Positions 11,071-59,921 of a DNA stretch of 64,000 nt are shown piece after piece. The stretch is taken from assembly GCA_973895155.1 (NCBI GenBank), contig OZ316897.1, forward strand, positions 62,001 to 126,000, in the 5' to 3' direction. The position numbers and the translations under genes were made by a program. The stretch comes from Marsupella aquatica. Taxonomy: Eukaryota > Plantae > Marchantiophyta. The number at the start of each line of letters is the position of its first letter. The first letter of the stretch is position 1. A model generated the notes under the pieces. It did no database searches and had not been told where the DNA came from. It saw nothing but the letters and a program-made list of their open reading frames with translations.

Positions 11071-11089
11071 AAATCAGTACTTTGGGAAG

Positions 11090-11268
11090 GTGAGTACCTA
11101 AACATCAAATTTATTTCTTTCTGTCCTCCTAAATCTTAAATGGTTCATAAATCCAATGATAAAAGTTACAACTTACGGCATTTTGGTACTCAGATCTTAA
11201 ATGGTTCGTGTACTATTTGACCGGAATTGTAATTTTTACTAAATAAATTATTTGTTCTTACATGGCAG
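11090..11268 (+). other. Predicted 5'-UTR spliceosomal intron of the TET/JBP-like gene
   Basis: Donor AAG|GTGAGT at 11089/11090; T-rich tract and GCAG|ATG acceptor abutting the start codon. The upstream exon has an in-frame stop, so it is likely UTR. Confidence 0.6.
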
Positions 11269-17820: not shown

Positions 17821-17970
17821 GACTAAGTTTTAGGGTGGACGCTTCTCTCAGCATCCAGTGCAAAAACTAAAATTCTGAACACTTGTGAAAGGGGAGGGAA
17901 TGCTGATTCTAATAAAGTACAAACTACCTACCGCCCTCCACTGAAACTATGACCTGTCCCAGGTGAAACA

Positions 17971-19283
17971 CTAAATAGGAGACTCATGATATCGCTTAAC
18001 CCAGAATCCATTGATTCGGGTGTCAAGTGGGTGACCGTCTAAGGTAGTCAAGGAAACCGAACCGTTAGCCCAGATTTGGGCAACTCAATAAGGACCAATC
18101 CAATGGGTATGGAGTTTCCCAGGAAATAACATATAACAGGAATCAAAGACTAATGCTAAATCACCAACATCTAAATTCACGACTCGCAGCTTTTGATCAT
18201 AAACAAGCTTACGCTTGTTCTGAATTGTAGCTGTATGGTCTAACGCTAAAAGTCTAACTTCTTCTAATTTGACAATATCATAAAACCTATGTGGGAGACT
18301 AGCCGCTGGAGAGAGACGGTTGGATACCAAGAGTCGTTCTGTCGGGAAGGAGAATTCAATAGGAATAATACTGTCTAGGCCATAAGTCGGGTAGAAGGGA
18401 GTGTGAAGGGTTGTAATTTTCTCGGTAGTACGGTAAGCCCATAATGCAGAATGTAACTTCACATCCCAGTCTGTCTTGTGAGACTCTACTATCTTATTCA
18501 GGATCTTGCCCACAATGCCATTAGCTCTTTCCGTTAAGCCATTAGCTCTGGGTTTGTAAGGAGTAGTTTTGCGATGCTTGATAAGATATGTGTTAGTAAT
18601 TAACTCAATAGTTGAGTTAAGAAAATGCAAACCCCTATCGCTTACCAACTCCAAAGGACACCCGAACCGAGTAATAATGTGCTCAAAGAGAAATGCAGCC
18701 GTTGTTGTAGCATCATTCTTGCGAGTGGCTTTAGCCTCCACCCATTTGGTGGCATAATCAGTGGCCAAAATAATGTATTTACTTCGGCTTTTTCGAGCTG
18801 TTGGTGAAATTGGGCCAATAAAATCAATACCCCATTTCTCAAATGGTGTCAAAGGCAGGATGGGCGTAAGAGGCCATTTGGAACTAGCAGTGGGTTTCCC
18901 TATTCTTTGACAGGGGTCACACGTCTTAATAAAGTTGTAAGTATCTCTATGCATGGTAGGCCACCAGTACCCATCATCCAAAATTATCTTTACAGTAGTA
19001 TTGACAGCACAATGGCCACGTGTTTCACCAGAATGTAAAGCTTCAATTACTTGTGGGAGTTCCCTGTTCTCCAGACATCGTCGCATCTTCTGATCAGGAC
19101 CTTGTTTAAACAAAGTGCCCTGAAGGATAGTATAAGGTCCCACCTTATGTGCAAAAACAGCTCGTTCTTCCGCATTAAGGCCTTCAGGAAAACTACCATG
19201 AATCAACATGTGCACAATATCAAAATACCGTGAAGACTCTCCTTCAATGTGCCACAAATGCTCATCTGGGAATTCATCAGAAA
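17971..19283 (-). pseudogene. Gypsy pol C-terminus: integrase (HHCC, D,D35E, GPY/F) with one in-frame stop at 18085
   Basis: H(SGETRG)H...GYWWPTM...CDPCQ, WGIDFIGP, VSDRG, NGLTERAN, KLHTHWIGPY*; frame continues to TAG at 17971. Confidence 0.95.
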
Positions 19284-19919
19284 GATTATGCTGATTCTCT
19301 GGCCTGGGTAAGATGCACGGGCATTGGGCAAGGTGAATCTTGTCAGAAGTTCACATTTGTTAGACTAGAACCATTGGGATGCACAAGCTTTGAGGTCTCC
19401 TAAGCAATCACCAGTGCCTTTGATTTTGTCCCTAAACTAAGCAAAGTTCTCTTGTAGCATGTTAAGGGGAGCCCTCTACCTCTAAACCATGAGATCCTAA
19501 ACTAACTTCACTTGAGACATCTCTAGGTACGTAAATAAACAAACACTCATCAGGGAGGTCCAATTCTCAATTTCAGAGATAGTAGACATAGAAGTAGGCC
19601 CTATGGAGATAGATGAAATCAATAGAACTGAGAAACTAGTGGGGAGCAGGAAAACTACTCATACACAAATAGTCGCTTCCAAGTTGAAATTCCAAGTTTT
19701 AGAATAGAAAGAAAAGTGACTCTTCTATGGTAATAATGGATAGAAACCAAACAGAGATAAATAATAAGAAAAAAAACAACTAATGCAAAGATAAATTGAA
19801 TTTAGGGTGAAATGAATACAATGGGCATCATCATATATACGGGCATATATATCTCACAGCTTTGTTCATTAGAATCCCCTGGGAACTCCACATGTAGAGA
19901 TTTTGACTTTGATTCTTAT

Positions 19920-22900
19920 CTAACTGTAATTGTAATCAGTAAACATATCAAAGTGAATTCGCTCCGAGGTCGTGTTGTCCCTTTGATCAAGTGCAGCATA
20001 TCGAGCTTCCCGATCTTCATCTACTTGCTCTTGTCTTGCATGACACTGAGCCCATCTTCTCTTACTCATGTCATTCCTAAATGCCATTTGTCTCTCCTCT
20101 CTCTGTCCGGGGGTTTCCTCAACCATAATACCTTCCTCATTGTACAGTTTATACACACCAGGTCCTCGCTTGTCTGAAAGTTGTAATTCATCATCAATGT
20201 CCCCTTCTTCTAGGGATTGAGTAATGAGGTAGGACTTACTGACACCTGCAGCACTTCCCCATCTTAACATAGGCAGCTCACCTTTCAAAAACCCAGCTGC
20301 CACCATCAAATTGTACATCCTAGCAGCCGAAGGCCCTGCTCGACTAAATAATTTCCACAAATCTAGACCACCATCCTCCATCTCTCCAGTAACTGAGATG
20401 CGGACATCTGCTTTCTTGCCTGACCTTCCCACAACTTTGTATAATGTTCTTGTGAAGCAGTACCATTTGAAATACCGAGGATCCTTGAGCATGTTGTTGT
20501 ATGTTTCAATGTGATGGACACTCCACAACCATTTCTCGATCTGCTCCAAAAAACTTATCTGCTGATTTGTCCTGTAACTAGGTGTCATTAGTATCCGGAT
20601 ACTTGGATGGTGCTGCCAGATAGAAAAGTAAGTGGGGGTCGCTTCGTACATAACAGCTATTCCATCCTGTCCTTCTATTTGATCTCCCTCTTGCACTTGG
20701 TAATCCTGTGGTGGATCATGATATCCCCAAAGCAAAGCGGGACCAAAGTACTTCCCAATATTATAATTATACACACCTAGCTCTAACCATGTAATAACTA
20801 CTTCCGTGGGAGTCACTGCTTCCCAATAACTACTTTTCTCCAAGTGAACCAAAGATACATCTTCGGGGTTAAAGGGGTATACATCATTTCTAAAGTAACC
20901 CCCTTGACGAGCCACCACCGCTGGGTCACACCTCAATTCATAAAAGAACCTCATTGCCAAGTGACTAAGCTCAGGTGCAATTGGTAGATTGAAACTCATC
21001 CAATCATCAGATACTACTATGTCAGAGGTGAAAAATGGGTTGAATGCGACAGTAACCCCGTCCCTCTCCATCTTCTTCCACTGGGCAGCCTCCAAAAATG
21101 TGATGAGTCGGGGAAGTGTATACTTCCCACAATTGATCCGTACTTCCCGAGCAGCCCACGTTTTCAATATCAAGGGCAACAACTCATATAACTTACTATA
21201 AACATCTAGACAACATTTTCTCTGGTTATCCCTCTGTGCTAATCCCTCATGAACCATATTAGCCATTGCTTTAAGTGCAATAAAAGTTTCATTTTGAGGA
21301 TGCTCCCTTTCTAATTCCGACAACATGAATTGAGCTATTCGACTGTTAGCCCGACCTCCTAATCTATAAGACAAATCCTCAGGTAATTGTACATTAATAT
21401 GTCCAGACCACTCAAAAAAAGGCAGCATGAATCTAATCCTTATGGGGACTTCATCCCAAATCTGATCCCAATCTCCAGGTCTGATGTCCCTTTTATTTAC
21501 CTCTGCACTGGCCAAAATTATCCGAAGGGTTTCTAGTCCGAGGGCTTCATCAACCTCAATCGGATGCCAACCATCACTCTGCTCTCCAGACATTGTGGTC
21601 CAGTGGTTGATGCTGATCTTTTTCAGGATCTCAACTCGTTGTTTGTTTATTGGGTCTTTCAAAGCCCCATCCAATAACTTGGTGGCTTTCTTTGCTTCAT
21701 CTCTCAACTCTTGCACTCGAAGTTCCCAAGCATCATAAGCATGTCGTGGTATCCGAACATCCTTAGAATTACATTGCACCAACTCTCGCTAGGCTATTTC
21801 ACCCAACCACTTCTTTCTCTCCTTCTCTCTCTGCTTGGCACTTAATTCCAATGTTCGGATATACTCCACCCTCTCCAGGTTTTGCTGCTCCAACTTTTGT
21901 AACGCTTCAAAAGTCAGTGTGAGCTGCTGGGTAGTTTCTTTTAGCGACTTCTCTATCACTGTTATCATCTGAGAGGTATGACCTGCACATTGAGAGTGAG
22001 TATGGCGCACTTTAGCAAATTCATCTTCTACTTGCAGCCGCTTCTCCTTTTCTTCTTCATATTGGCCTGAAGCCTCCTTGCTCGCTTTTTGGGCCTCCTT
22101 CAATTGTGCATTCAACTCTCTGCCCTCTTCTTCAAAGGCAGCTACATACCGACTCAATTCTTCTGCCTTTGTGGTATTCTGAGCGTGTTGCTTCTCTGCT
22201 TCCTTCCGGACAGTTGTCACTTCCTCTATCAGCAAAGTAATCCTTGCCTCTTTTTCTTGGGACTTCATCTCCTGCTCATACAACATTTGTTCTCGTATCT
22301 CCACCTTCTCATTGAGGAGTCTCACCATCTCCTTGTTTTCCTTCAGCAAACTCTCCAACTTCTCAATCCTCTCTTGGAGCTTAAGGTTGGTGTTGGCGCT
22401 TCTGAACAGATCTTCTTCCTGCTGCTTTGCCTTTTCTCTCTCTCTTACCCCAGTTTCTGCTTCGAGTGCACAAATGTGAGCCAACCCGCACACTTCCTTG
22501 GCTTGATGTAACCACAAACGCTTGTCACTTCCTACAGGGAAGGGTCGATTAATAAACTTCATCCTCTGCTCAAAGGAGGTGAGCTCAGACAGAACAACAT
22601 TTGATAACAACTCTGTCAACACTGGTTGATGGTATACATAATCAGATTGGGCAGTGGATGTCACAGCTTCTTCTTCCTCTTCGACCGGGATTATCACTCT
22701 CCTTTTCTTTCTTTTCAAGGACTTAACACACGCATTCCCCTTTATCCTCAATGTACGTAATCCTTGTGCGCCTTCTTCATCAGAATTGTCCACTTCATCT
22801 GCACTGCTTGAGACCAGGCCCGAGACCAGGGATCCCTTTGGGGCATAGAGTCTCGGATTATCTTCTTCCCCATCCTCGCTCTCCGACTCCTCCTTTTCTT

Positions 22901-23657
22901 CTTCCTCCTGGTTTGCCTCCTCTCGCTCCTCTGAATCGCTATCCTGCAAGGAGATTATTGTGACCGCGGTTGTGATCCTATCGGCAGTGAGGGCGTGGTC
23001 CATCACTACGCTTAATACATATGCACAAATTGACGGAAACAATGGTAGCCCCTTCCTGGTTATAACACTTGCAAGGTTGCGCTTCCATATCAGCAATGGG
23101 TGAAGAGTTCCATCTAATACTCTCTTGGCAACTGATAGTTGCTCTGGCGTTACATAATGGTACCCACTCTTGAGGATTACCCATTTAGTAAAGAACTCCA
23201 CATACTTGCGGACCTCTTGGTTTGTCATAACGCCATATTGGACCTTCTTCTCATGCTGGAGCTCTCCTCCTTGTTTTAGGAAGGCACTCATCTCTCTTCC
23301 CGTAAGTGCCTCAATTGGATAGTCAGCTGGTAGGCTGTCTGGGGCGAAAATCCCAAACAAAGTCGCTAATTCCTTGTTGGGGATGCGGTAGGCTTGTGCT
23401 CTGTATGTGATAAACACTCCAGTATCTGCAAAATTGACATCCACAATATCTTTGTAAAGCTGACAAGCACGATCAATTGATACAAACCTATCAATTCGGA
23501 CAAGCCCATAGCATCGAGCCCTTTCAAATATCTCTCTGTATTCTTCAATGAAAGCCACCTCAGAGATTGAGTTCCTCAATCTTTCTTCTGGAGTTGATCG
23601 AGGTTGTTTATTTTTGGCTGGAGGGACCTCTACTCGGGTTTGATTTGGAGATGTCAT
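19920..23657 (-). pseudogene. ~1245-codon ORF split by one TAG (21789): PMD/Transposase_32-like domain, acidic/basic linker, coiled coil, then ~620-aa unknown globular region
   Basis: ORFs 21789-23657 and 19920-21782 are in the same frame, separated only by the stop plus two codons (GEIA*RELVQC). No introns apparent. Confidence 0.7.
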
Positions 23658-26904: not shown

Positions 26905-29900
26905 TTAATCCTTTAAATCTTTTGTTTGAAGGTTTCGCCACTTGTCTTTCAGATCAATCTGTGTCAAAGTCAATAAAACATGATAGATGAGCATGCAATT
27001 TGTCTTGTGTGCAAGGGTAAATACAGTAATACAAAAAGCAGGATATAACCATAGAAGACTTACTTCAGACCGGTCAATGAAGTGTGCACCCTCGGCAGCA
27101 AGAATTCGACTCCACTTGCCTGGTCCAAACCTGAAATTAACCTTGGCTTAGAAAACCTCTTGTTCTTAGAGAAAAACACCAATTAATACCAGCTAGGTAA
27201 GATATTACGTCAATGCATTTTGATTGATAAGTCATAGGTTCACTACTTGCCTGCGGACTGCCTGTTTGAGACAATTTGTTTCCTCTTTAGACCACCTTTT
27301 AGTTGCCCTACGAACACGTATTAGACCATTGGGGCCTTCTTTCATGACTGCCCGGGTGATCAATTTGGAATTTTGTATTCCAATACAATCTTGATGCAGC
27401 CTCAACCTCTTAGATGACGGGCTGGACGTATCCTCCTTCCCTGTGCCCTGCAAAGACATCCAATTTGTAATACTCCAGCAAGGATTGCAAACATTACAAA
27501 ATACAGTACATCTTCCATACTGTACAAGATAGATGTTGTTGTCACCAATGATTAAAAACAAGAAGTTTCCTGCGGACCACCTCACCTTGGCACTCGAAGT
27601 TGCTAGATTGCCCTCCTCTGCTTTGTCTTTGGATTGGAACGGGGTGATTAGGGACCGAGAAGCAGGATTTAGCAAATCTATAATTCGTTTTCTCCCTAAG
27701 TTCTTCCCCATTTCACAAATGCCTTTGTAATTCTCACTCTGTGGGGCTGGAAGCTCAACTAATCTCTGTTCTTCCGGATGAATTAGGTGTTGGACTTCAT
27801 TTGATGATTGTTGCATTTTGCTAGTAGTAATTCCTCTGTTGAGCATATTAACCTCTGTGCTCACCTCCCTGGGCCCTCACTCTTACTATATAAAGTGAAC
27901 CCCCCTGAGAACAGACACCCCCCATGTACCCCTTCTTAATATTTTTGTTCACAAAAAAAATCCCCTTGTTAATATAAAAATATTAACTTTTCCTATTAAA
28001 TTTTATCCTTTTGTAAATTATAATATAGTTTTTCAAGGAATTGAAAACATCATTGAATTTTTAAAATTGCAAATATCATACTGAAATAGATAAGACTTTA
28101 TTTTGCATAGGGGACTTGTATGTTACGCCTTTGTTTAGGGTACATATTTTATATAGTTAAACAAAATTAGTACCAGAGAATTATAGTTCTTCCTGTAGTA
28201 TACAGACAAGCATGGCTGCACTATCCTCTCAGTGTTCCTAAAGCCCACGAAACCAAACTTGCCTTATGACGACAAATAATTAAATATCTGATTTACTATA
28301 TGAACATGTGCGCAAGTAAAGTGATGACATGTGTGCCAACCATATAGTGACATGTGTACTTGGCATTTTGGGTACCCTTGCATAAGATTAATCTGACATG
28401 TATTTGATAAGAGCCTTATTACTAATATTGTGCTGAATATATATACATGGATGTTGCCTACTTTAAAAACTATTATAAAAATTAGTTTGCATTACATTAA
28501 AAACACCCTTGCGATGTTCGCACGTCCTCCCTGTATTAGTAACACTTAGGGCCCAGGGGCTCACCTCTGTCACAAAAAGAACACCACATTAGAGACTTCA
28601 ATTCTCCATCAACAGCACATACAAAGACCTAGGAGTCTGAAACTACTCTATACACTATCAATCTGAACTAATCAATGCTAGTTCTAGTGCAATTTTGGTC
28701 AAACTGTAAGACTACATATGAGTTGAACTATGACATTGGTGAGCACTACATACCATACACTGGTTGGGAGGATGCCTGCTTTGGCAACAATACAGGCGCC
28801 ATGATCTGCTGGTTGGCCACCTCCAAAGGAGCTCCTTCATTCTCATCTATCAAATTCTCTTTACCTGTTCCAATCTCCACCCGCCTTTTTCTATAGTGAT
28901 TCAATTTAGACTGCAAATACAACCATCCAATTAACGGAAATGATATTTCTCCACCACAATATGTATATTCACAATGACTTGCAGCAAACAACAAATCAGT
29001 CCCACCTTTTACCAAATCTGATAGCTAGTGAGAGAAGACAAGGCCCAAACATTGTTAAAACAATGCATCTGTCTCCTAGCCTGTGAGTGCGGGACAAAAC
29101 CAATGGAAAAATCCCAAATTTTTTGTGCACCACTCCATCGAGCGGTGCAAATTAAACCAACTATTTAATAAGACATTTAAGAAAACAATCCTTTGGAGGA
29201 GGAGGGGAAGGGAGAGAATCATGAGCTAAGTTACCCAAGGTTGATCCAAATAAATACCTGAAGCTCAACTCGGACTTCCTCGGCAACACTTTCATACTTG
29301 TCTTTCAAAGTATCCACATCCCTACGAACTGAGGCCAAGGTGGTCACCATCATTTCATTCCTCTGTAGGAGTAGCTCCAACTTGACACCTATTGTGTTGT
29401 TTGCCTCTACTTGCATCCTCAAGTTGGTCAGTATTGTTTCGTTCCTCTCTGTCTGTAACTCCAAGGTGGTTGTCATCTTCTCATTCCAGTCTCTCTGGCG
29501 CTCTTTCTCTATTTTCAACTCACCTACAACCTCCATCAAGCACAGGCATGATGTACAACAAGATCTGACTGTTTTTGAAGCTTCTGAAATGCTCAAGGGG
29601 AATACATTCTTTAGTGTGAATATGTCAGAGTGCTCCAGCAACTCCGTACCAGTTGTTGTCAACTCGATACCAAATTTTGTCTTCAATTTTCCCTGTTCTC
29701 TATCCTCTGTTCCAGGCGTTGCTTCCGCTTCGCCCAATGTCTTCCCTGATATTTCATGTTCTTTACCCCCCGACAGAGGTTTTGTCTCTTGAAGACTCAA
29801 TGTCTTCATGGACGTTGCATGATCTTCATGGATTATCCCAACCTTTGTCACCATCTCATTGTCACAAGCTCGATTGAACAAAGAACCATCTTGGTGTCCG

Positions 29901-30820
29901 TTCACAAAAGAACCATCTTGCTGACCTTGCGGCTCTGCTCCACTAGTTGAGAATAGCCCAAGAAGTCCTCCACTGCTACATGGATCACCCTCATGCACAC
30001 TAGAAACAACAGTTCCTTTGGCATGTCCTGACATTGCATCATCGTCGTTCACAATTTGCAGATGCATTGTGAGATGTTTTTGTCCTGTGCAGTTCTCCTC
30101 CATCCCGTGGTTTTCCACTCCATGATGCTCCACACCCACTTGAGTAGATGTTTTCCAATGGAATACTTGTGGCCTTGGCAAAGACACAATTGAAGGGGAC
30201 TTCTCACTCAACAGAATTTGCAGATGGGATCCAAAATTGTAAGTGCAAGTCATGTTACCTTCAGAGATTTGTTTCCGGGCTCTGCAGAGGAGGTCGATCA
30301 GTCTCCCGCCAAGATATTCTCCCCAATTCTTCCTACTACTTGTTTCTTCAACTTGCTTTATCTGGCACAAAGACACATCGGCCCTGCTCCCCTTAAAGTG
30401 AAGAGCCCCCAATTGAAACTCTAGCCTCTCTCTGATTAGGGAATCTTTGCAATATTGCAATGAGTAAGAACCATTGCTGTTCCTTTTAATCCCTGCGAAT
30501 GACCTTGGATTATATCGAACTGCTTTTTGCTCAAATGGCTCCCCTGACCCTTGCAACTTGAATGTCTTCTTGGTAGAATCCAAACTCAAGTCTATTCTTC
30601 CCCCACAAACCCATGTTTCAGATTGTTCACTGTCAAAGTTCCGGATGAAATCTATCATGTCAGACTTAGAATGACTCTTAGTGTCCCAACGAACTCCCAA
30701 AACAAAATCTGCAAGCCCATTGTGCTGAAGATATTCTGAATGTTGCGCTTGACACAATGTCGTTACCACAAGTGGTGGGATAAAATAGAATGTTGGCATC
30801 GCCATAGGCTTGGAAGACAT
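26905..30820 (-). pseudogene. Multi-exon gene: PMD-like domain + coiled coil + C-terminal telobox (TRF-like) Myb domain, disrupted by a MITE
   Basis: Large exon 30820-29258 ends CAG|GT. Final exons splice to RWSKEETNCLKQAVR|RFGPGKWSRILAAEGAHFIDRSE|IDLKDKWRNL, matching the telobox consensus DLKDKWRN; stop at 26905. The phase link between 29258 and 28890 is not resolved. Confidence 0.7.
27867..28558. mobile_element. 692-bp non-autonomous TIR element (MITE) with 8-bp TSD
   Basis: TIR CCCTGGGCCCT / AGGGCCCAGGG (imperfect match extends to ~22 bp); TSD GCTCACCT at 27859-27866 and 28559-28566; AT-rich non-coding interior. Confidence 0.92.
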
Positions 30821-30982: not shown

Positions 30983-31480
30983 TACAATAGTGTCAATAAC
31001 ACCAAGTAATTAACATTCATCACCAAGAATGCTAAAAATGCATTTGAGTCAGGATATTCGGGTGCTATGGTGATTGGCGCGAATGAAATCCGCCACTTCC
31101 CCGGGAAAATTCACAATGTCTATGCACACATGAACCCACTGTCCCTACTTGTCAACCTTGGGTTCAACTAGAAAGAATTGTAGGGAACTAGATCCAGAGG
31201 CACATAGACATGTACAGTAATAAATCTGGTGTACAGTGTCAATAACACCAAGTAATTAACATCCATTGCTCAAAATGCTAAAATGCATTTGAGTCCAGAT
31301 ATCCGGTTACTATGGTGATAGGCACAAATGAAATCCACCACTTCGAGGAAGATCCACAAAGTCTATGCACGCAGGAACCCATGTACTGTCCCTACCCATC
31401 AACCTTGGTTCAACTAAAAACAATTGTAGGGGAACTAGATCTAGAGACACGTAGCTATGTTTTGCAATAAATCTAGTGTG
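30983..31480. repeat. Diverged tandem duplication, ~245-bp unit, upstream of the telobox gene
   Basis: AGTGTCAATAACACCAAGTAATTAACAT...ATGCATTTGAGTC...GGAACTAGAT occurs twice. Confidence 0.8.
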
Positions 31481-32586: not shown

Positions 32587-33765
32587 ATGTACAAATATTG
32601 AGGCGAGACCAAGGAAAGAACTGTACACTCCTTGGGACAAATCAATAGTAGATTTATGAAGGTGAGTACCTTAACATCAAAATCCCCCCTTTCTTCCCAC
32701 CTAGTACATGTAAAATATTCATAAATCTAATGATAAAAATTACAACTTACAACTGCATTTCGGTACTCAGATCTGAAATGGTTCGTGTACTATTTGACCA
32801 GAATTATAATTTTTACTGAATTAGAATTAAAATCTTGAAAAAATTTATGTGGATTTGTTTGCTATAGTGTGGGAAGATCTAAAAAAATTGACACCATAAA
32901 ATTGAAGTTTACACTTTATTGGATTCTTTATTATGAAATATTCTTGAACTTTTAGTTAGAAAAGTTCTTAAACTAAAGTCCTCAAGGTTTTGAAGGACAC
33001 TGTTTTTGAATGGCTATCAAAGATGTCACCTTTTGGATGTGGTTACAATTATCCCTATTTTCATTGCTCCCCGTGTGAATGAGGGTACTCTTATCTCCTG
33101 AGGGTACCCTTGTGCTTGAGGGTACTCTTATCAGTGAGGGTACTCTTATCAGCGAGGGTACTCTTATCAATGGGTACGCTTATCAATAATGGTACTTTGA
33201 TCAATAAGGGTACCCTTATCAATGAGGATACTCTTATCTCCTGAGGGTACCCTTGCGTATGAGGGTACTCTTATCAATGAGGGTACTCTTATATCAGCAA
33301 GAGTACTCTTATCAATGAGGATACTCTTATATCAGCAAGAGTACTCTTATCAATTAATGGGTACACTTATCAACAATGGTACTTTGATAATGAGGGTACC
33401 CTTATCAGTGAGGGTATTCTTATCTCCTAAGGGTACCCTTGCGTTGGGCCTTGTGCATGAGGGTACTCTTATTAATGAGGGTAATTTTATTAGTCATAGC
33501 AAGCAACAAAGCAGGCAGGGAACCCCATGAAGGCGCCCCGCACCGGCAGAAGGACTCCGAACATACTGAAAAGACCCTAAACCTCACTAGACCAACATTT
33601 TGGGTATTGCATGGACAAATACTAGCCGAAGTACATGCCTAAATTTACCTGCTCTGTTTTAGTTCCCTAAACCAGGGGTGATTTTTTTCATCAAATCCAT
33701 ACATTGTATCCTAGTTTTTTTCACACATGATGTAAACCTACATAATGTGAAAGTGGGAGAGAAGA
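32587..33765 (+). repeat. Long direct repeat copy 1 (TET 5' remnant + GAGGGTACTCTTAT minisatellite + conserved tail)
   Basis: Highly similar to 40827-42160 from TGTACAAATATTGAGGCGAGACC to GTGGGAGAGAAGA. Confidence 0.92.
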
Positions 33766-33940
33766 CTTATGATTTGATACAATCTTCATTTAACTATAGT
33801 ACAATATTCACTAATCATCAGTATATATGGTAAGCTCCAATTCCTCCATATAGTATGTAGATAAAAATTGAAGCAATCGATGAAATAATTAACAATTTCA
33901 TTACACTTGATATTAATTACACTGCTTCCTTACTTCTTCC

Positions 33941-36900
33941 TCACCAGTACTCAGGATATTTTGTTTTCACAATAGCAGCAGCAAACAAAACAAAGTTATT
34001 CACTACTTTCCCTGTACCTATCTGCATGAACCAAGTAGCAAGTTCTTCATCACTTTTCTCTCGAATTTCCGGAAATTCCTTGAACAATTCTGTTTGTATC
34101 CGAGAAACCCTCCAGCCTTGCCACACAAAATGTCAAAGACGCTCGCCTGTTCTATCATTGCACTGATCACCATATGGTCCTTTATGAATACACATTCCAG
34201 TGACAACTACAGTATGTTGAAAGTGACACTTAAAACAAGTCCATGCATTTTGAGGGAATGTGTTCTTGCAGGTCCGGGCCTGGTGAGATCCTAGACATCT
34301 AAAACACAATGACCGCAATATAGGACAGTTGACAGCATTGTGTACTTCTTGCTCCCTTGATTCAGGACACTGACAAATTAAGCATTGACTTCCATCACCC
34401 GCAAAAGTTCTGATGATACGAAGATCCCTTTTATCACTCTCAAAAGATCGGCTGTGTGCCATAGCCCTTAGCCTTGCAACCACAGGCTCTGCTTCATGTA
34501 CCCCTTGTATAATTGGGGTCATCGGCAAGGTGTTTCCTTGTCGTCTTGGCATGGGAGTGGCTGGGGGTTGCGTAGGAGTTTCATATGTTGACTCATCCGA
34601 ACCCCCTCTTCCTGGAATTCCCATTGAAGATGATGCTACCTCATGTGGTGGAATTGAGGCTGTTCTACAAGGAATGTCTTGTGTGAACACCTCAAAGTCG
34701 ACTATGTCCACACCTGGGCTGCACATCACAGATGCTTGGGAACACAAGTCACACAAACTAGAGAATGGAATAAGATGACATACTTGAGGTTTTCCATCGA
34801 CCTGGTCATGGAGCCCAAACCGACGACATGATGTCTTGTTCTCTATCCATTTGTGTGAAGCCGCTGTGGTTGAATCAATGCGTTCGGCCATCTTGCGATA
34901 AGCAAGGTTGGTCACCACATAACTCATCGCCGGGAGCCCATCACGTCCACCTCGTCCAGATTCTTGGTGGAAGTGTTCCAGAGACCTGAAACTACCACGA
35001 TGAATGACAAGCTTAACCCATTTATAATTGTATCCACTACTAATCACTCCGGTGGCCACCATGATCTTACAAGCACCTGACGTCCAAGAACTCAATGAAG
35101 CCCTCTTCACCGCTATGTCCAGATGCGCATGCACATACACACATGACATTTCTTTCCCTTGGAGGATTCTTGTAGTTGATTCCACCTCCTCGCGGGTTAG
35201 ACAAAATACTAGGGCCCTCTCTTCTGGCAAAGAATATGCTCTCCAATCACGCAGAAGACTCACTATTTCTTGATCCATCATGTTATGGCCAACCTCAACA
35301 ACGGCATACCTGATGTTGGGTCTCACAGTAGGACAACGAATCCACACCATCTCTGTAGCTAACATCCGCTCAATATCAACTTGATTCTTGGGTGCTAGGG
35401 ATGCAGTTAACCCTATGATTTGGCAATTAATTTCCATGAGGCCAACCAACTTTTTCATTGACGGTCGAAAGTCAGATAACAGGAGGTGCACCTCGTCGTA
35501 GACAATGGAATGCAAGGAACCACTGCATTTCAACTGCTTTGCCAAGATAATGAATAGTTTGGATTCTGCAGCAATCTCCACAGCCACAAAAATGATTGAA
35601 GGAGGTGTTGCCACTTCGACTGCACCATCCTTATACACAACACAACTAATATTTGCTTGTTTGCATTCCTCTACGTGGCCCTCTACTAGGATAGTGAGTG
35701 GAACGATCACAATCACCGTCCTATTCTGTCCCATGGTGGAAGGTGCCATGAACACCAATGATTTTCCAGACCCAGTGGGTAGTATGGCAACAAAGTCCAC
35801 CACATTATCTATGGATAGAGCAACTGCTGTTGCTTGTTCCGACGATTTCCACTGTTGATGACCAAGCCTTCTTAAGGCTTGACAAGCTCCAGCAGTCCTA
35901 TTGAGACAAACTTGTAGCAGGGGATCACTTTCTCCACTTGCCAATAATGTCTGATGGATGTTTGAGTGGAAAACTGTAAACCGCCTCCTTTTGGGAATTT
36001 GCCTCACCTCATATTCAACACCTCCAACGGGTCCCAAAAAGTCAAAAGGTGCAGTCGACATTACCTCGGGCCTCTGTGACCCACCGAGGCCAACCAACTT
36101 GTGCCACAATCGTGACACCAATACACACCCTCTTAAAATATGTCCATCCATGCCTCTAGGATCCTTTGTACTACGAGCATAGTGATGGCCGACCATAGCT
36201 GTTTCATGACCACCTGCTACATCCACAAGGTCTTCTTGTAAATGGGCCTTACAAGCTCGTATATTCTCACTCCAATGTGCTGCCACATGCCGGTACTTTG
36301 CAATCCCAAATGGAATGCCACAGTGCTTTTGGAAAGCATCTAATACACTGGCAGAAAGGTCTGCTCCCGTCAGCCTCTTGTCCATGGCCACAAACCAACA
36401 ATCCAGGTACATTGCTGCAACTTCCGGACCCCACAAAATATTCGCCACGAAAGATTGTACTGGGCGAACTAGACATAACAATTTCACAAATAGGTGGCTT
36501 TGATTGTCAGGAATGAACCGAGCAGTGAGGTTTATAGGTTTCCCAGCATTTGCACATTTGTGGTAGGATTGATAAACCATCAGCGTATCAGATAACCAAA
36601 TGAATGCTCTATCCCCAGTGGCAGTGTTGCGAATCAATAGGCTCGAGTATTCTTCCCCTCTTGCAGGTAATCCAGAACAGAAATGCAGAAGTAGGTTCAA
36701 TAGCCTCTGTAGCTTGGAACATGCAACCATCCACCTGTGGAGTGCACGCATGTTCCAAATAACTCCATTTACATTGTCCACTCGTAGGATGAAATGTGCC
36801 ATCATCATAGTATTACTGAACATGTGGTTCAATAGATCCTTTCCATGTTGTTGGAACTCTGGATTTCGGGCGTCTATGAGAAAAGAATAATGCACTTCGT

Positions 36901-38898
36901 CTGTCTGGATAGCATCATGAATGCAGCCCTTGGTACTCACCAAATTGAGTATCCATTCAGATTTGAGACCGAGAAGAACATCATGGTTGAGTGTTGTTGT
37001 CGCTTCTTCAACAATGGCACGGATCATATCCCTGAACGCATTCAATGTGATAATATCACCGTCAATTGAGCATGTTGTTTGTGTATCGTCCATGTGTATG
37101 AGATTTGGTCGAGCATGGGTGCCTCGATTAATTGTTTTTGCCAGTCGCATGTACTCCCGAACTTGAGTAATCGGCGTGTCCAATGCCACATCGCTCACGT
37201 ATTTCTCCAGGATGTTTACTTCATTCCCAGGTAGGCCACGTGGGTTTGGATGCCAAAGAGCTTGTGAGAGTTCCATCAGGATTGTACATCTTGCCCAGTA
37301 GTGAAGTATTGCCAATATTTTGGTGATTTTCCCAATTTTGCAAAATGCATACCCTGTGGATTGGGAACCCAGCCCGTCACTCTTTAGAGAGTGGAGGATA
37401 AAGAACCGAGTGAGCAAACAATCCGCCGGTGAACGAGCATACAACAGCTCCGGAATTTTTGGAGTCCAGAGAAGAAGTAGTACTCGATGGATATTTGTGA
37501 GATCAATATCACCTTCTTCTGCAGGCCGCGCCTCACTTGGTTGGCCTAATTGTGCCAATAATTGTTGCAGGGCACCTTTTAGATCCGGCCTATCTGTGTA
37601 TATAACACAATGTTGAGGCCGAGAATCATAAGTACAAGAACGAACGAGGCAAAGAAGAAGGGAAACCATTCCAGCACAGTATTGTGGAACAGTGTTTTTC
37701 TCTTGTAGTCCACCCAATCCCCTTGTGACATCGGCATTTGGAGTCGGCTTCATCACCATTCTTTGCACCCTATAATCTAAATTTCCACTAAGAATATTTC
37801 TTGTGCATGTCATGTACGCACGGACCACAGTGCCCAAGTACGATAGTGAAGACCCAGGGTCGGCGGGCCTTGGGGGTTCCATCTCAGATTGCACTCAACA
37901 AATGGCACACCTTCCGGCATGAACTGGGATGCAATCTCATGCCATCTTGATACCCTTAGCCACGGCGACAATTCCCTCACTGGAGGTGCAAGATCTGTCT
38001 TTAATGACTGTAGATGAGCTTGAAAAACTTTTGCGACTGCACCTCTCGTACTCTGAGCTACTACATCGTCCGCAAGGTACACATTGCCATGGTCCACTCC
38101 ATAGAATTTGCGGCCGACTCCCTTGAAGAGGGCTTGCACTTGACATGGAGTAGCAATGTCCTTGAAACCAAGGTGGTTGTGTTTCATACATCGGTGATTT
38201 GCCATCGTCCGCTGTGATCTACAAAAGAAGATACATCTCGAGCAAGAGAAGCCCCAATGAATGAGGACGCCCGGAACTGGAGACAACAATTCTGCAGTTG
38301 GATTGATTGTGTATGGTAGTAGGGACGCATCATTTGTACGTGTGAACAACACACCCTGCAACAAAACCGACAATTGCTCTGGTGTTGGATTTGTGATTGA
38401 ATTTTGTGTTGCAACTCTCACCCTGTCCATGTTCCTTCGATGACTTCCAACATGACGGATAATGCTACTTCCTTCCGTGTGCTGAAGGGCTGTATGGCAT
38501 TGCAAGCATACTAGAAGAACAAGGTTGTTGTGGTGAACAATGCAAAGCTTTGCATTTCTCAACATGTCTGGTGTTGCTAACAGGTCATGATCTAGGATAG
38601 TGGTGGGGACTTGGTTGACAATTGGATCGTCTACATCCATGAACGGGTCAACTCCTACTGCTTCATTGTGTTTCCTTTTGTAGTGAAGATGTAAACTATC
38701 ACTACGGGGATAGGACGAGGAACATGTGGCCACAGGGCAATGGAATCGACCATCCTCTTCTTTCTCAATGATCTGGGTTGTGCCATTGTTGAGCTGCAAT
38801 TGGTAAGTAGAACGGTGAACTGAGCGGGAATGGGAACTGCGAGAGTTTGCTGACTGAAATTCTTCCCCACACTGACTACATCCAAATACTGTCACCAT
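33941..38898 (-). pseudogene. C2H2 zinc fingers + DUF3505-like region + tyrosine-recombinase-like domain + RecQ helicase + C-terminal Zn knuckles (~1650 codons; one frameshift ~37895, one stop at 34133)
   Basis: CSQC..H..H and CPVATC..H..H fingers; PWLRVSRW; SGLPARGEE, YHK, KYRH, GH......HY; RecQ motifs LPTGSGKS, DEVH, TAS, VAT..SSG, QESGRGGRDG, RQC-type CRR...C...CDLC; CFRC...H...C. Frame continues past the TGA at 34133 to 33941. Confidence 0.85.
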
Positions 38899-40773
38899 CC
38901 TGCATGAAAAACAACAAAATTAGCTGATGCCATATTTTGCTCTGAAATTATATAGAGCTCTTCACATCAGATTTTCCCGTGGAGCTCCACAATGGACTCT
39001 GAAGCCAATCTCAATTGGCCAACTATCCTAGTATTTTTCATTTTCCATTACCTATGTCCCAAGCTTGATCTGCACCATGAATGTGCAATGTAACCCAAAG
39101 CTTCACTGACATAGAAGTTGGTTGAGCATGTTCACACATTCAACGTACTTTGTGAGCACAGACACAAATTAAACGAATTCAATCCGAATCTTCTCCAAAA
39201 CCTGGTCAGTTGGATCATATTTTCACTATCTTGGGAAGTGAACTTGTACCATGCACTCTCTCGATGCCCTTGGGGCTAATAATTACTCCAATGCCTCTAA
39301 AGCCACCAAACTAATTAATAAAGCCCAAGAACTTATGCCATGGTAATTAGTGACACTATACGGTATATATTGTCATTCCATATGATAATAAATCACATAC
39401 TATTATTCATTGTACAGTCTATGTTCTTATATTTTGATGTGCTATTACTAGGACACTGAGAACTTATACATACCACGTACATACCCTAAAAAATTAAACT
39501 TAGAATGATAGAGCCTTGTGTATACATACTGCATCTAATGCCTAGTTGCAATGAAATAAATAATTCTACTTCAGGATATATTATTTATGTGTGTAGGACC
39601 CCCTAAATGTTTTCACTGGTAGTAAAGTAATCATTAAACTGTTAAACCCTTTCAAGGTATTATAAACACTTAATGAACACTCAACTATTATTTGATTCCT
39701 ACCCAGAACAATCTTTATGGTACAACCTCTCGCCAAGTTATTGAGTATCCACCAGGCTACAAGTAGTCAATTCAGATTGGCGGCAGAAGAATAATCATTT
39801 TGCCTTGAGTAACTCTGAAGTGTGATTCGTTTATGCCTGGTTTGGCCTTGATTTGTCATCCGTCACATCTGGTCATCCCGCCCCTATCCTGACACCGTCC
39901 CAACCTCATCCCAACCCTATCCCAACCCCACCCGGTCCCAACCACACCCCGTAGGGCAACATGTAAACTTGCCCGTTAACTCAAACCGGGCATTTATCCC
40001 ACACAAAGATCATCCAACCCCAGGGGCAAGTGAATAATCATTATGCATGGAGTAACTGTGGAGTGTGACTCATTTCTGCCAAGGGAAGATCATCCAAACC
40101 CAAGGGAACACAGTACATTGAAAATGGTCAGAACATTGAACTACACAAACAAAGAGGGAGCTCGACCTGTACTTGCTCTAGGTTGGTCTCCTAGTGGTGT
40201 TGGCTATGCTGACGAGGAAGAAGCCTGAAGCAAGCTGCCTCTCTCCAGCCACAATTCCAGGATCCTGAAAATTAAGCTTAGTTCACACCCTGACTTGGGC
40301 GTATGGCCAGGTTGACATTTTCCCTCCCTATCATTCTTATTGTTAGGAGAACAGGATTGACAGTTTTGAAGTAAATTCTGGTGTATTATCCTTTCCTTTT
40401 AATTAGTAGATATTTAAAAAACAGAAGGGTTTGCAGAATTGATCACAAAGGACATGGTTACATTTCATTATATTGAGTTTATGATGGTTTTATTACATAA
40501 ACCCTAATTTTGCTTTGAACTTTTTATTGAATACTCCACGTTTCTCAGATTGCACAAGGGGACCTGGTTGACATTGGGATGACTTTGTGAGTGCAAAATC
40601 TACTTCCGTTAGTAGTTGGGAAGCTATCCGCCCTCTTTCACAAGATATTGCCTTACAGTTCATTCAAAAGTAAGTTGGCTTCAAGCACTATTGTTGCCAA
40701 TGATATGAAGCTCTATATGCACTTGGAGAAATGAGTTTCAGTTTCAGGTTTCTTGTCATTGTTTTTGGTCATC

Positions 40774-42160
40774 CTCAAGACACTAAATCCTTTTAGTGTT
40801 CTGTGCAGTGTCATTCATGCCAACATTGTACAAATATTGAGGCGAGACCAAGGAAAAAACTGTACACTCCTTGGGACAAATCAATAGTAGATTTATGAAG
40901 GTGAGTACCTTAACATCAAAATTCCCCCTTTCTTCCCACCTACATGTTGAATTATTCATAAATCTAATGATAAAAATTACAACTTACGGCATTTCGGTAC
41001 TCAGATCTAAAATGGTTCGTGTACTATTTGACCGGAATTGTAATTTTTACTGAATTGGAATTAAAAGAAAAAAAATTCAGTGGATTTGTTTGCTACATTG
41101 TGGGAAGATCTAAAAAAATTGACATCATAAAATTGAAGTTTACACTTTATTGGATTCTTTGTTATGAAAACATTCAAGTTGAACTTTTAGTTAGAAAAGT
41201 TCTTAAACTAAAGTCCTCAAGGTTTTGAAGGACAGTGTTTTCGAATGGCTATCAAAGATGTCACCTTTTGGACGTGGTTACAATTATCCCTATTTTCATT
41301 GCTCCCCGTGTGAATGGGGGTACTCTTATCTCCTGAGGCTACCCTTGTGCTTGAGGGTACTCTTATCAGTGAGGATACTCTTATTTCCTGAGGGTACCCT
41401 TGCGTATGAGGGTACTCTTATCAATGAGGGTACTCTTATATCAGCAAGAGTACTCTTATCAATGGGTACGCTTATCAATAATGGTACTTTGATCAACGAG
41501 GGTACCCTTATCAATGAGGATACTCTTATTTCCTGAGGGTACCCTTGCGTATGAGGGTACTCTTATCAATGAGGGTACTCTTATATCAGCAAGAGTACTC
41601 TTATCAATGGGTACGCTTATCAATAATGGTACTTTGATCAACGATGGTACCCTTATCAATGAGGATACTCTTATTTCCTGAGGGTACCCTTGCGTATGAG
41701 GGTACTCTTATCAATGAGGGTACTCTTATATCAGCAAGAGTACTCTTATCAATGGGTACGCTTATCAACAATGGTACTTTGATAATGAGGGTACCCTTAT
41801 TAGTGAGGGTATTCTTATCTCGTAAGGGTACCCTTGTGTTGGGCCTTGTGCACGAGGGTACTCTTATTAATGAGGGTACTTTTATTACTCATAGCAAGCA
41901 ACAAAGCGGGCAGGGAACCCCATGAAGGCGCCCCACGCCGGCAGAAGGACTCCGAACGTACTGAAAAGACCCTAAACCTCACGAGACCAACATTTTGGGT
42001 ATTGCATGGACAAATACTGGCCAAAGTACATGCCTAAATTTACCTGCTCTGTTTTAGTTCCCTAAACCAGGGGTGATTTTTTTTATCAAATCCATACGTT
42101 GTATCCTAGTTTTTTTCACACATGATGTAAACCTACATCATGTGAAAGTGGGAGAGAAGA
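40774..42160 (+). repeat. Long direct repeat copy 2 (shared part 40827-42160), with expanded 133-bp higher-order minisatellite
   Basis: Matches copy 1. Its 5' ~480 bp aligns to ~10908-11500 (TET 5' exon, intron and start of CDS, translating KLKFTLYWILCYENI...LLVRKVLKLKSSRF versus KLKFALHWILCHDNILELFVKKVLSLESSRF). Confidence 0.92.
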
Positions 42161-43039: not shown

Positions 43040-43455
43040 TTATTGGATTACCCCGGCATTTGCTTCGTATCTATGCGTAGGATACCCCGGCATTTGCTTT
43101 GTATCTATGCGTAGGATTACCCCAGCTTTTGTATCCATGGGTGTGGCCAATTTCCGAACATTAACCTTACTGGTACTTTATTAATTATAAGATTACCCCG
43201 GCTTGCGTTTCGTATCCTTGTGTAGGATTACCCCAGATTTTGTATCCATGTGTATGGCACAAATCTTGAACATTAATTAATGTACATTTATTGATGGATA
43301 AGATTACCCCAACTTTCGTATCTGTGTGTATGGCACAATATCCTAAGATTAACCTGTCTAGTACATTGCTTCGTGATTGGATTACCCCGAGGTTCGGACG
43401 TATTCCTAACATTAACCTTAGTTGTACATTACTCGATTATTAGATTACCCTGAAT
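43040..43455. repeat. Degenerate GGATTACCCC minisatellite
   Basis: GATTACCCC followed by TTT(C/T)GTATC recurs about 8 times. Confidence 0.75.
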
Positions 43456-48700: not shown

Positions 48701-51131
48701 TCATTTCATTGTTGGAGGTTGAACCAAGTAATGGACGTCCATGAGCTTGCCTCTTTGGTTCCGCGATGAACGGTGTAACTGGTTCAGCGTTCGACACTTG
48801 CTTTCTCTTCAAATTCCTCACTGTACATTCCAACTCTTCAACCTTTGCAAGAGCTATGTGCAATTGGTCATCCTTGAATTTTAATTCTACTTTCTGAGTC
48901 AAAATTATTTGTTGCAAGTCTACATTCTCGCCCAATCTACAATGCACCTGTTCAAGCTCTGCCATTGTACGCTCTAAGTCCAATTTCAAAGACTCCACGT
49001 TAGTGCACTGAGTATTGCGTTTGGCAGTGCACTTTGCTACCTCATTTCTCAGTTCCCCCATGCACATTTCGTTCTCCTTCAAAGCTTTGTGAGCAATTGC
49101 GTATTCCGCCTTCAGCCTTGTCTGTTCTACAAGTGCTCGTTGAAGGTCTTCCAACTTGCTCTGTGACTCTAATCTGAACAACTGAAGTTGTGTGCTCACA
49201 TCATCTCGTTGTTTAGTGCACCCTGCAAGTTCACTTTCCAATTCTTCCATGCGCATTTGGATATCCTTCAAAGCACATTCAGCACCTAAACATGATTCCA
49301 TGCGCACTGCCTGCTCTACAACCTTCCGTTGAACATCTTCAAACGTGCAGTCTAACGACAATTTCAACAACTCAAGTTCATTGATCGCGGCATCTCATCC
49401 TGCAACACACCTTTCAAGGTCAGCACTCAATTCTGCCATGCGCGATTGGTCCTCCTTCCAACCTTGTTCAACAGCTTGGTAATTGTCATTGCGCTTTGTC
49501 ACCTGCACAAGCTTTTCTTCAAGGGCTTTCAACTTCCATTGTGACTGCAATTTGAACTCTTCAAATTCGCTGGTGACCGCATCTCGTTCTGCAGTGCCCA
49601 TTTGAAGTTCAGCACTCAATTCTGCCATGCGTGATTGGTCCTCCTTCCAACCTTGTTCAACAGCTTGGTATTCGTCATTGCGCTTTGTCACCTGCACAAG
49701 CTTTTCTTCAAGGTCTTTCAACTTGCATTGTGACTGCAATTTGAACTCTTCAAATTTGCTGGCGATAGCATCTCGTCCTACAGTGCCCATTTGAAGTTCA
49801 ACACTCAATTCTGCCATGTGCGATTGGTCCTTCTTCCAACCTTGTTCAGCAGCTTGGTATTCATCATTGCGCATTGTCACCTGCATAAGCTTTTCTTCAA
49901 GGTCTTTCAACCTGGACTGTGACTGCAATTTGAACTCTTCAAATTCGCTAGTGACCGCATCTCGTTCCGCAGTGCCCATTTGAAGTTCAGCACTCAATTC
50001 TGTCATGCGCGATTGGTCCTCCTTCCAACCTTGTTCAGCAGCTTGGTATTCGTCATTGCGCATTGTCACCTGCACAAGCTTTTCTTCAAGGTCTTTCAAC
50101 CTGCATTGTGACTGCAATTTGAACACCTCAAATTCTCTGGTGATTGCATCTCGTCCTGCATTGCACATTTCTTGTTCAACACTCAAATTTGCCATGCACG
50201 ATTGGTTCTCATTCCAACCTTCTCCAGCATCTTCATATTCGTCATTTCGCATTGTCTGTGCCGTCAACTCCCCTTCAAGGTCATCAATCCTGCCTTCTAA
50301 CTTTGATTCCGATGACTGAAGTTTACATTGAATAGGTTGAGGTTGGGTTTCCCTTCTTGTAGTACCCTCGTTGCCAACATTTGGCCCCGATATAAGGCTT
50401 TCCCATGAAAATCCCCAATGTAGCAGCAACTGTGTAATAGCAGTCCCACAATAAGCGGGGAACGCCTTTGACTCACGAACATTCCTCATACCCTGAAGGT
50501 GTTTCTTGAATTTACTTATTTCCAAAGCCAATTCATCGTAAACTAAATCACTCCAATCTGGTAGCAATTTTGGCACAGGGCCTGCTAGTCTTTTTCCCTT
50601 CGGCAAAGTACCACATAAATACCAGTAGAAATAACTCAATTGTTTCGCTGATAACTGTGAAGGCTTCTCCTTACCCAGCAGAATTTCCTGCACCACTCTA
50701 ATTGCCCCAGACCATCTATCATACGGAGCTCTCAAAAGCTTTAAACTATAGGGATTCCCTCTTATTCGTGGACGAACAAACAAATCATTGAATTCAGGAC
50801 AGTGCATTCTCTGCCTATACTTGGCAAATGTACCAGATGGCAGCTTGAATGCCGCACGTAACACATCTTGTGTGATTTTCAATGAACATCCTCGGAATTC
50901 ACTGGATTTTGATGCATAATCAAATCCCAACACAAACTCCTTCACCCCACATACGGCTGTTATGTTGTAATCAATCCCAAAAGTTTGTTGCAGACCAAGG
51001 TTGAAAATCATTGACGATCGAGTTGGATCACCTCCCACCAAACTACGAATTCGTTCCGGTGTGCAGGAATGCCACAACGTTCCAGTGCCGCCTGTTTCAA
51101 TTCCAACCCACGGATTGTCAAAATGTTCCAC
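45775..51131 (-). pseudogene. Multi-exon fusion: PMD-like domain + repeated coiled coil + SNF2-RING-helicase of the Ris1/FRG (CHR27/CHR28-like) group; nonsense codons at 49395 and 48459, frameshift ~47900
   Basis: EASPPDGLM..V...HQRKGLFWM..RE....CFGGILADDQ|GMGKT, TLIVCP.SV..QW..EI, YDVIITTY, WYRVILDECQ.I.N, RWCVSGTP, LRMRRHCGH, degenerate RING (CNKC|..DDPMISICGH...C...CGAPHC), KTIVFSQWT, LLSLK...GLNITAANHV..D.WWNPTAEDQAVDRTHRLGQTK. GT-AG introns at e.g. 48168 and 46229. Confidence 0.85.
49400..50260 (-). repeat. Coding tandem repeat, 180 bp (60 aa) x ~4.5, coiled coil
   Basis: RNDEYQAAEQGWKEDQSRMAELSAELQMGTAERDAVTSEFEEFKLQSQ..LKDLEEKLVQVT repeated. Confidence 0.95.
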
Positions 51132-59357: not shown

Positions 59358-59920
59358 GACCGTGCACTGCATGTAGGAGACCATGCACCGCGCTCCCTAA
59401 ATACCCTGAAATGGCCTGAAGACCGGCCTCATTGCACGCGCTGTGCAGAGAAGATATATACAGACCGTGCACTACATGTAGGAGACCATGCACCGCGCTC
59501 CCTAAATACCCTGAAATGGCCTGAAGACCAGCCTCATTGCACGTGTTGTGTAGAGATCGACTTGCTTTGTAATGTTGGTTCCTTTGTATTTTCATGGCAG
59601 GACGGTCTTTTTCGGGCACTCGTGGCAAAAAGACCACGAAAAAGACCGCAAAGACTGGGCATTGCGATCGCTGGGCTGCACAAAAATGTATATATAAAAA
59701 ATACCCTGAAATGGCCTGAAGACCGGTCTCATTGCACGCGCTGTGCAAAGAAGATATGTACAGGCCTTATTGCATGCGCTGTGCATAGAAGATATATACA
59801 GGCCTAAAGACCGGCCTCATTGCACGCGCTGTGTAGAGAAGATATGTACAGGCTCCCTAAATACCTTGAAATGGCCTGAAGACCGGGCTCATTGCACGCA
59901 GAGTGAGAGGAAGATATATA
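59358..59920. repeat. Tandem/subrepeat array of ~100-bp units
   Basis: AATACCCTGAAATGGCCTGAAGACCGGCCTCATTGCACGCGCTGTG..GAGAAGATAT recurs about 5 times. Confidence 0.9.
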
Positions 59921-59921
59921 C

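Follow-up and report, generated by a model that had tools for sequence, protein, structure and literature searches.

A predicted tyrosine-recombinase fold in the TLH domain of a RecQ helicase gene from a liverwort assembly

The ends of fungal chromosomes have been known since 1998 to carry telomere-linked helicase (TLH) genes, whose family-specific domain has been left without an assigned function. What kind of domain is this, and do the genes that encode it move? Both questions are raised by a stretch of 64,000 nucleotides from Marsupella aquatica (contig OZ316897.1, positions 62,001 to 126,000; this whole stretch is referred to below as the window), which carries a gene of this type on its minus strand. 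An initial annotation, made from the letters alone, had placed the catalytic set of a tyrosine recombinase upstream of the RecQ helicase of this gene and had proposed a transposase of a poorly described class of DNA element. We found that the domain in question is predicted to adopt a tyrosine-recombinase fold, and that most of the proposed catalytic set is kept across the family.

Fold and active-site residues of the TLH domain

In the window the gene is divided into two open reading frames (ORFs), an upstream ORF and a main ORF, which were searched separately and not as a joined sequence (Table 1). The catalytic region was modelled with AlphaFold2 (AF2) over residues 200-640 from 81 sequences, and the resulting model (m11c74d2f690e) has a mean predicted local distance difference test score (pLDDT) of 85.5 and a predicted template modelling score (pTM) of 0.82. 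In an exhaustive structure search with VIA-align against 48,161 solved chains, ranks 1-25 for this model are held solely by tyrosine recombinases, type IB topoisomerases and Ndc10. Archaeal Xer (4a8e) aligns over 163 residues with Z 11.0 and a root-mean-square deviation (rmsd) of 3.1, and is followed by XerH (Z 9.6, rmsd 3.3, 157 residues), XerA (Z 9.5, rmsd 4.2, 157), XerD (Z 9.5, rmsd 3.8, 160), Cre (Z 8.6, rmsd 4.7, 188), the Brujita integrase (Z 8.3, rmsd 4.5, 161), a bacterial topoisomerase IB (Z 7.9, rmsd 3.6, 160), IntI (Z 7.7, rmsd 5.5, 185) and Flp (Z 5.8, rmsd 4.4, 178); a second type IB topoisomerase scores Z 7.2, and Ndc10 Z 6.0 and 5.9. The Foldseek search of the same model against the PDB was weak, with E about 0.5 and nothing at E≤0.001; lambda integrase, Cre and XerA were within its top ten. 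On the model, then, the domain between the OrsD part and the RecQ core has a tyrosine-recombinase fold, as the initial annotation had supposed.

A second model (AF2 m480055cef270, pLDDT 83.6) covers main-ORF residues 1-300. Its eight best chains of the 48,161 are those of the Brujita integrase, XerA, a Haloarcula integrase, Xer, IntI, Ndc10 (Z 4.5), XerD and XerH, and in each case it is the N-terminal domain of the enzyme that is matched. These matches, at Z 5.7-4.3, are each weak and in the range usual for helical bundles, and taken together they are suggestive of a predicted helical domain of the recombinase type, that is, an N-terminal core-binding domain.

Conservation was counted over 102 family members that span the region and are 20-50% identical. 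Of these, 100 have R412; E415 is found in all 102, K446 in 101, R535 in 101, H563 in 100 and Y572 in 101; R429 (100 of 102) and Y444 are extra invariant residues of the family, and position 536 is H in 80 members and Q in 22. The family consensus reads G-x-P-A-R-G-T-E ... Y-x-K-T ... R-H-x-x-A ... Q-A-G-H-S-x-x-T-A-x-x-x-Y-A, and the motifs of the main ORF begin at residues 408 (GLPARGEE), 444 (YHK) and 533 (KYRH), followed by GGH...GHHY. The spacing from H563 to Y572 is nine residues, the same as in XerD; in the AF2 model K446 comes after a predicted strand pair and Y572 terminates a helix. For alignment with hhalign, E. coli xerD and xerC, lambda int and P1 cre were taken from annotated records. 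The register on XerD pairs R412 with R148, E415 with E151, K446 with K172, R535 with R247, H563 with H270 and Y572 with Y279, and places XerD H244 in a gap. The alignment of the family with XerD/XerC is colinear along the entire catalytic domain, yet not significant (E 0.52); among the hhalign comparisons, colinearity was found in the Xer alignment only.

As judged from these alignments, the R-K-R-H-Y set is real and far beyond chance. R412, K446, R535, H563 and Y572 lie in ORF 34133-37894 where the initial annotation had put them, and the conservation across homologues that it looked for is seen for each of R, K, R, H and Y (100-101 of 102). Its reading of a complete R-K-HxxR-H-Y signature stands in part: the R, K, R, H and Y are present in that order and conserved, but KYRH is not an HxxR motif, because the residue three before R535 is variable.

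Several results weigh against reading the domain as a recombinase. The HxxR histidine is absent family-wide, position 532 being Ala here and S, N, A, R, G or Q in relatives. None of the Pfam recombinase models matched any of 10 members at E≤10, or the ORFs of the window at E≤1. A profile of the domain (A2) found no chain at E≤10 when run against all PDB sequences, and the other family profile (A1) retrieved helicases only. The hhalign comparisons with lambda Int (E 0.057) and Cre (E 0.21) were likewise not significant. As to the histidine, Cre tolerates its loss, and type IB topoisomerases have lysine in its place.

These points bear on a second explanation, in which the recombinase fold would be a catalytically dead DNA-binding module and the protein merely a targeted helicase. 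The precedent is Ndc10, a subunit of the kinetochore complex CBF3 and a eukaryotic protein with a recombinase fold, which has lost the catalytic residues. That Ndc10 is among the structural matches of both models, that the HxxR histidine is missing and that profile-level similarity to active recombinases is lacking would all fit such a module. The TLH family, unlike Ndc10, retains the catalytic residues: across deep divergence, at least 98 members in 100 keep each of R, K, R, H and Tyr, with the spacing of active Xer enzymes, which would be hard to explain without catalysis. We consider a dead module improbable.

The TLH family and its distribution

The published descriptions give a TLH a pair of C2H2 motifs at the N-terminus, RecQ motifs and, adjoining the helicase on its upstream side, a TLH domain of some 250 amino acids (aa); they describe this domain as one of unknown function, and report the family from fungi and one choanoflagellate (bioRxiv 10.1101/2024.02.27.582403; 10.1101/2022.03.07.483234). 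Both C2H2 motifs of the window gene fit the published patterns, Cx2-3Cx8-14Hx3-5H and Cx2-5Cx11-16Hx4-5H (bioRxiv 10.1101/2024.02.27.582403). On sequence features the gene has the published TLH architecture, the described TLHs of Magnaporthe and S. pombe being compared by description and not by alignment. This agrees with the initial annotation, which had noted a resemblance to fungal telomere-linked helicases and had described a C2H2/DUF3505-like N-terminus and a full RecQ core; the C2H2 motifs, the OrsD domain (E 7.9e-9), the DEAD and Helicase_C domains and the RecQ motifs were all recovered.

The order of parts is like that of the fungal TLHs (Magnaporthe TLH1, S. pombe Tlh1/2, Ustilago UTASa, and those of Fusarium and Botrytis) and of Monosiga. 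Published TLHs are also multi-copy, with intact and broken paralogues mixed, and the family of the window gene resembles them in this. The TLH domain is about 340 aa long as delimited in the window gene, compared with about 250 aa in the papers. Whereas the papers treat the domain as one of unknown function, in the window gene it has, by prediction, the tyrosine-recombinase fold and the active-site set. Unlike the fungal TLHs, the window copy is in a bryophyte-like plant and is not at a telomere.

The helicase is, on sequence comparison, a superfamily 2 core nearest to RecQ enzymes. Pfam places DEAD at main-ORF residues 687-838 and Helicase_C at 889-986, and a phmmer search of solved structures gave human RECQ1 (E 1e-24) and chain 1oyw (E 1.5e-24), then WRN, RECQ5 and BLM; 1oyw is deposited as 'ATP-dependent DNA helicase', and we take it to be E. 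coli RecQ. The helicase motifs are intact, with motif I PTGSGKS at 35759-35779, a DEVH box and motif VI QESGRGGRDG at 34937-34966. The CRR...C...CDLC stretch after the core is presumably the counterpart of the RecQ zinc-binding subdomain; Pfam RecQ_Zn_bind had no match in the window ORFs, and neither RQC nor HRDC domains were detected there with Pfam.

An exhaustive HMMER search with the non-helicase residues 1-680 as query yielded 1390 cluster representatives at E≤1e-3. The long representatives that were scanned have the layout of middle domain and helicase again, with OrsD in most. The Atlas clusters of the family come from Ascomycota and Basidiomycota, and the named relatives are Agaricomycetes (Gloeophyllum, Pleurotus, Leucocoprinus and Marasmiellus). 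One of them, annotated by its depositor as 'ATP-dependent DNA helicase tlh1' (P0087), has a middle part homologous to the domain of the window gene (E 6.9e-19). Word-index protein searches gave one liverwort match and no named relatives. Nearest of all, at 48-51% identity, is a protein of the liverwort Calypogeia fissa, from a locus that is decayed and split into several ORFs. In Leucocoprinus birnbaumii, a Cauli_VI (caulimovirus inclusion-body) gene lies at 18718-19985 of contig L010, 4 kb from a TLH-family gene.

Because the nearest protein is from Calypogeia fissa, it is plausible that the sequence originates from a plant genome. The named relatives are all fungal, as would be expected if a fungal contaminant had entered the plant assembly; the rest of the 64 kb is an ordinary repeat landscape that resembles the copy in composition, and sequencing runs of two organisms contain the gene or a near-identical sequence. 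Chance resemblance of the motifs is excluded by the fold and conservation results. We regard contamination or chance as extremely improbable.

Compared with Xer (archaeal XerA, XerD and XerH) and Cre, which give the best structural matches for the catalytic domain and, weakly, for the putative N-terminal domain, the window protein has no significant sequence similarity, lacks the HxxR histidine, carries the additional invariant R429 and Y444, has a catalytic domain about twice as long, with insertions, and is fused to zinc fingers and a helicase. Cryptons are likewise eukaryotic, with an intron-poor tyrosine-recombinase gene; as described in papers (the comparison being by description and not by sequence) they are without a helicase, the fungal ones having GCR1_C. 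The mode of movement proposed for them is site-specific recombination at a short motif that one terminus has in common with the target (PMC9977147), and the three-base motif shared at the breakpoint mapped below would fit this. The captains of Starships (DUF3435) are tyrosine recombinases too, are fungal and move large DNA. Unlike in Starships, no cargo structure was seen, and no Pfam family matched the domain (E≤1 in the window, E≤10 in 10 members), DUF3435 being included if the library has it. In the searched literature, which covered few subscription journals, no paper was found that connects a tyrosine recombinase with TLH or RecQ, or TLH with plants, and 'Crypton-H' occurred there solely as a RepeatMasker class name.

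Table 1. Positions in the window of the gene, its parts, its lesions and its flanking features
Feature	Position	Strand	Basis or remark
Upstream ORF, N-terminal part of gene, 362 aa	37810..38898	-	translation
C2H2 motif 1, C7-x2-C10-x12-H23-x4-H28 of upstream ORF	38815-38880	-	translation
C2H2 motif 2, C54-x4-C59-x12-H72-x4-H77 of upstream ORF	38668-38739	-	translation
OrsD/DUF3505 domain, upstream-ORF residues 122-241	38176-38535	-	Pfam E 7.9e-9
Frameshift site	37894..37895	-	upstream and main ORF in different frames, 85-base overlap
Main ORF, 1253 aa	34133..37894	-	tyrosine-recombinase-like module, RecQ helicase and C-terminal Cys/His cluster
Helical domain, core-binding-like, main-ORF residues ~15-260	37115..37852	-	AF2 model and structure search
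Tyrosine-recombinase-like catalytic domain, residues ~263-605	36080..37108	-	'TLH domain' of the literature
Candidate active-site codon R412	36659-36661	-	
Candidate active-site codon E415	36650-36652	-	
Candidate active-site codon K446	36557-36559	-	
Candidate active-site codon R535	36290-36292	-	
Candidate active-site codon H536	36287-36289	-	
Candidate active-site codon H563	36206-36208	-	
Candidate active-site codon Y572	36179-36181	-	
RecQ-type helicase core, residues ~663-998	34901..35908	-	Pfam, phmmer, motifs
Four-cysteine stretch CRR...C...CDLC, residues 1023-1051	34742..34828	-	inspection; directly after helicase core
C-terminal Cys/His-rich cluster, zinc-knuckle-like	34220..34384	-	conserved with P0002
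In-frame TGA ending main ORF early	34133..34135	-	next in-frame stop 33941-33943
63 extra codons in main-ORF frame beyond TGA	33941..34132	-	~56 align to C-terminus of P0002
Breakpoint, ~175 bases downstream of natural stop	33763..33766		R1 on its left in the window
Direct repeat R1	32588..33765	+	~20 copies of an 18-base unit
Direct repeat R2, 1.9 kb upstream of gene start	40827..42160	+	orientation as R1

State of the window copy and its flanks

The division of the gene into two ORFs was examined with P0002, an intact relative of 1654 aa from a Logan contig. In a tblastn comparison, P0002 residues 27-346 align in one frame (38760-37900) and residues 358-1651 in another (37864-33956), the alignment continuing past the TGA at 34133-35 for about 56 residues. 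An intron at 37810-37894 was rejected, as the alignment leaves 36 bases for 11 residues of P0002 and so no room for one, and as all contigs show a one-base difference. These are Logan contigs from four public runs and were aligned on 33500-39400; two of the runs are from the same organism and two from a second, sister-species organism, whose runs contain 30-43% of the sequence words. All contigs over 37894/37895, in the four runs, have one additional base that merges both ORFs into one frame, and position 34135 is G and not A in the contigs of runs X1, X3 and X5, giving a sense codon. The gene of the contigs is thus a single intron-free open frame of about 1652 codons, and a contig of 5814 bases from X1 is 99.7% identical to the window (16 letters and one gap apart) with the frame open. 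Neither lesion of the window is supported by any contig at its site, in the same or the sister species, although contigs drop rare variants. The window copy is therefore either a very young pseudogene or the bearer of two assembly errors.

Two direct repeats, R1 and R2, flank the gene. Each contains 20-28 copies of the 18-base unit AATGAGGGTACTCTTATC, and their non-tandem parts are 92.9% and 96.3% identical; R2 contains a 145-base higher-order unit. At the breakpoint at 33763-66, the gene-side contigs of both organisms run left into an unrelated flank and not into R1, and contigs that match R run right into the sequence found after R2 at 42161. The right edge of R is mostly followed by the A-rich sequence that stands at 42161. 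The trinucleotide AGA is common to all three junctions, being found where R1 and R2 end and also in the alternative flank. A partial third copy of R at 10906-11500, which holds a perfect 57-base duplication (10956-11072), has no adjoining gene and has 56 more bases in common with the sequence upstream of R2, which means that the repeat does not naturally end at the R1/R2 edge. Flanking repeats were absent at the related loci L001, L002 and L003.

It is tempting to see in R1 and R2 the recombination sites of an element, or ends resembling long terminal repeats, such that a circle of the gene plus one R would integrate at AGA and generate R-gene-R or head-to-tail arrays. The two repeats flank the gene on both sides in like orientation, the R1/gene junction has the shape that a circle or tandem junction would have, and the other two junctions that are needed were seen in contigs (other flank, AGA and gene end; R end, AGA and the flank at 42161). 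For Cryptons, moreover, the use of a short motif common to donor and target has been reported (PMC9977147). Three common bases are nevertheless expected by chance once in 64, and the non-tandem parts of R1 and R2 diverge by 4-7%, compared with a difference of 0.3% between the gene and the other contig. In run X1 the depth of R is also 5-7 times that of the gene, and the solitary third R, the unnatural edge and the relatives at L001-L003 that lack such repeats point the same way. We consider it distinctly unlikely that R1 and R2 serve as ends: the flanking repeats look older than the gene copy. The breakpoint and the 1.2-kb direct repeats are best taken as leads to mobility only.

The window contains further features. 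Tandem duplications flank the block of R, gene and R at 30989-31479 (period 247, two copies, 82% matches) and at 43045-43310 (periods 111/34). A retrotransposon-type integrase ORF (Integrase_H2C2 and rve) is found at 18085-19257, within 15343-23657 on the minus strand, and the three long ORFs around it (825, 620 and 622 aa) have no Pfam match at E≤1, not even to reverse transcriptase. The ORF at 9875-10555 on the plus strand (226 aa) has three weak matches to PHD fingers of the NSD type (E 5.5e-5 to 1e-3), which are below the Pfam cut-offs. Two ORFs on the minus strand, at 29231-30820 (529 aa) and 49395-51131 (578 aa), belong to no convincing family; the latter includes an acidic stretch and gave a faint match of the ubiquitin-like type (E 1.3e-3). 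At about 20-32 kb and 44-54 kb of the window, the GC skew is strongly negative.

Recombinase activity and the spread of TLH genes

From its N-terminus, the intact protein would consist of two C2H2 fingers, OrsD, a two-domain tyrosine-recombinase module, a RecQ helicase with its zinc subdomain, and a Cys/His tail. Such a protein may cut DNA through a 3'-phosphotyrosyl link at Y572 and then rejoin it, in the manner of Xer, Cre and Crypton enzymes, while the RecQ motor would unwind or branch-migrate the substrate during recombination. Site-specific recombination could in this way allow the gene to copy or move itself, in fungi at chromosome ends and here also at internal sites. We count as traits like those of a selfish element the lack of introns, the decayed copy in Calypogeia, the contig with an open frame at 99.7% identity and the sharp breakpoint just past the 3' end, which two species share. 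On balance we incline to regard the TLH protein as an active tyrosine recombinase with a coupled RecQ motor, which spreads its own gene. The transposase of a poorly described element class that the initial annotation proposed remains an inference.

The case against such spread includes the locus itself, where one breakpoint and the repeats were mapped and where neither the ends of an element nor target duplications, empty sites or junctions of a circle were demonstrated. The sequence was not found in any run on record as RNA. As for the link to telomeres, there is no telomere array within the 64-kb window, and neither fungal- nor plant-type telomere repeats occur in the related loci L001-L003 and L008-L010. 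An interstitial motif of the plant telomere type is found at 59919-59939 of the window, with two perfect TTTAGGG units after an imperfect one and no array.

The main rival, in our ranking, is a host factor for the maintenance of chromosome ends, which would not be mobile and whose copies would multiply only through ordinary subtelomeric duplication. In that case the recombinase-like domain and RecQ would act jointly on telomeric or subtelomeric DNA, by repairing ends through recombination, by resolving joint molecules or by nicking in the manner of a topoisomerase. The literature does place TLH genes beside telomeres in fungi and one choanoflagellate, in large duplicated subtelomeric blocks (bioRxiv 10.1101/2024.02.27.582403; 10.1101/2022.03.07.483234), and the two type IB topoisomerases score well against our model (Z 7.9 and 7.2). 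The window copy, on the other hand, is internal, with no telomere array in its 64 kb, the family is patchy, multi-copy and includes dead copies, and a liverwort relative that is only about 50% identical suggests fast turnover and not a conserved host gene. A host function of this kind appears unlikely to us.

A wider proposal follows from the reading of TLH proteins as active, self-spreading recombinases, and we put it forward tentatively, as possible but short of probable: TLH genes may encode the recombinases of a superfamily of DNA elements that has gone unrecognised in eukaryotes. It would combine an Xer-like tyrosine recombinase with a RecQ motor, occur across fungi, choanoflagellates and bryophytes, and enter chromosome ends as well as internal sites through site-specific recombination. 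If true, the superfamily would account for the 'telomere-linked' pattern and for families with many copies, some of them dead. In the literature searched, we found no description of a recombinase and a RecQ motor in one chain for any mobile element, and a protein of this kind could be of interest as a tool enzyme. If the TLH domain is an active tyrosine recombinase, it becomes testable by what route subtelomeric gene families pass between chromosome ends, whether TLH genes serve telomere repair or behave as selfish elements, and whether it was ancient inheritance or transfer that brought a fungal-type family into early land plants.

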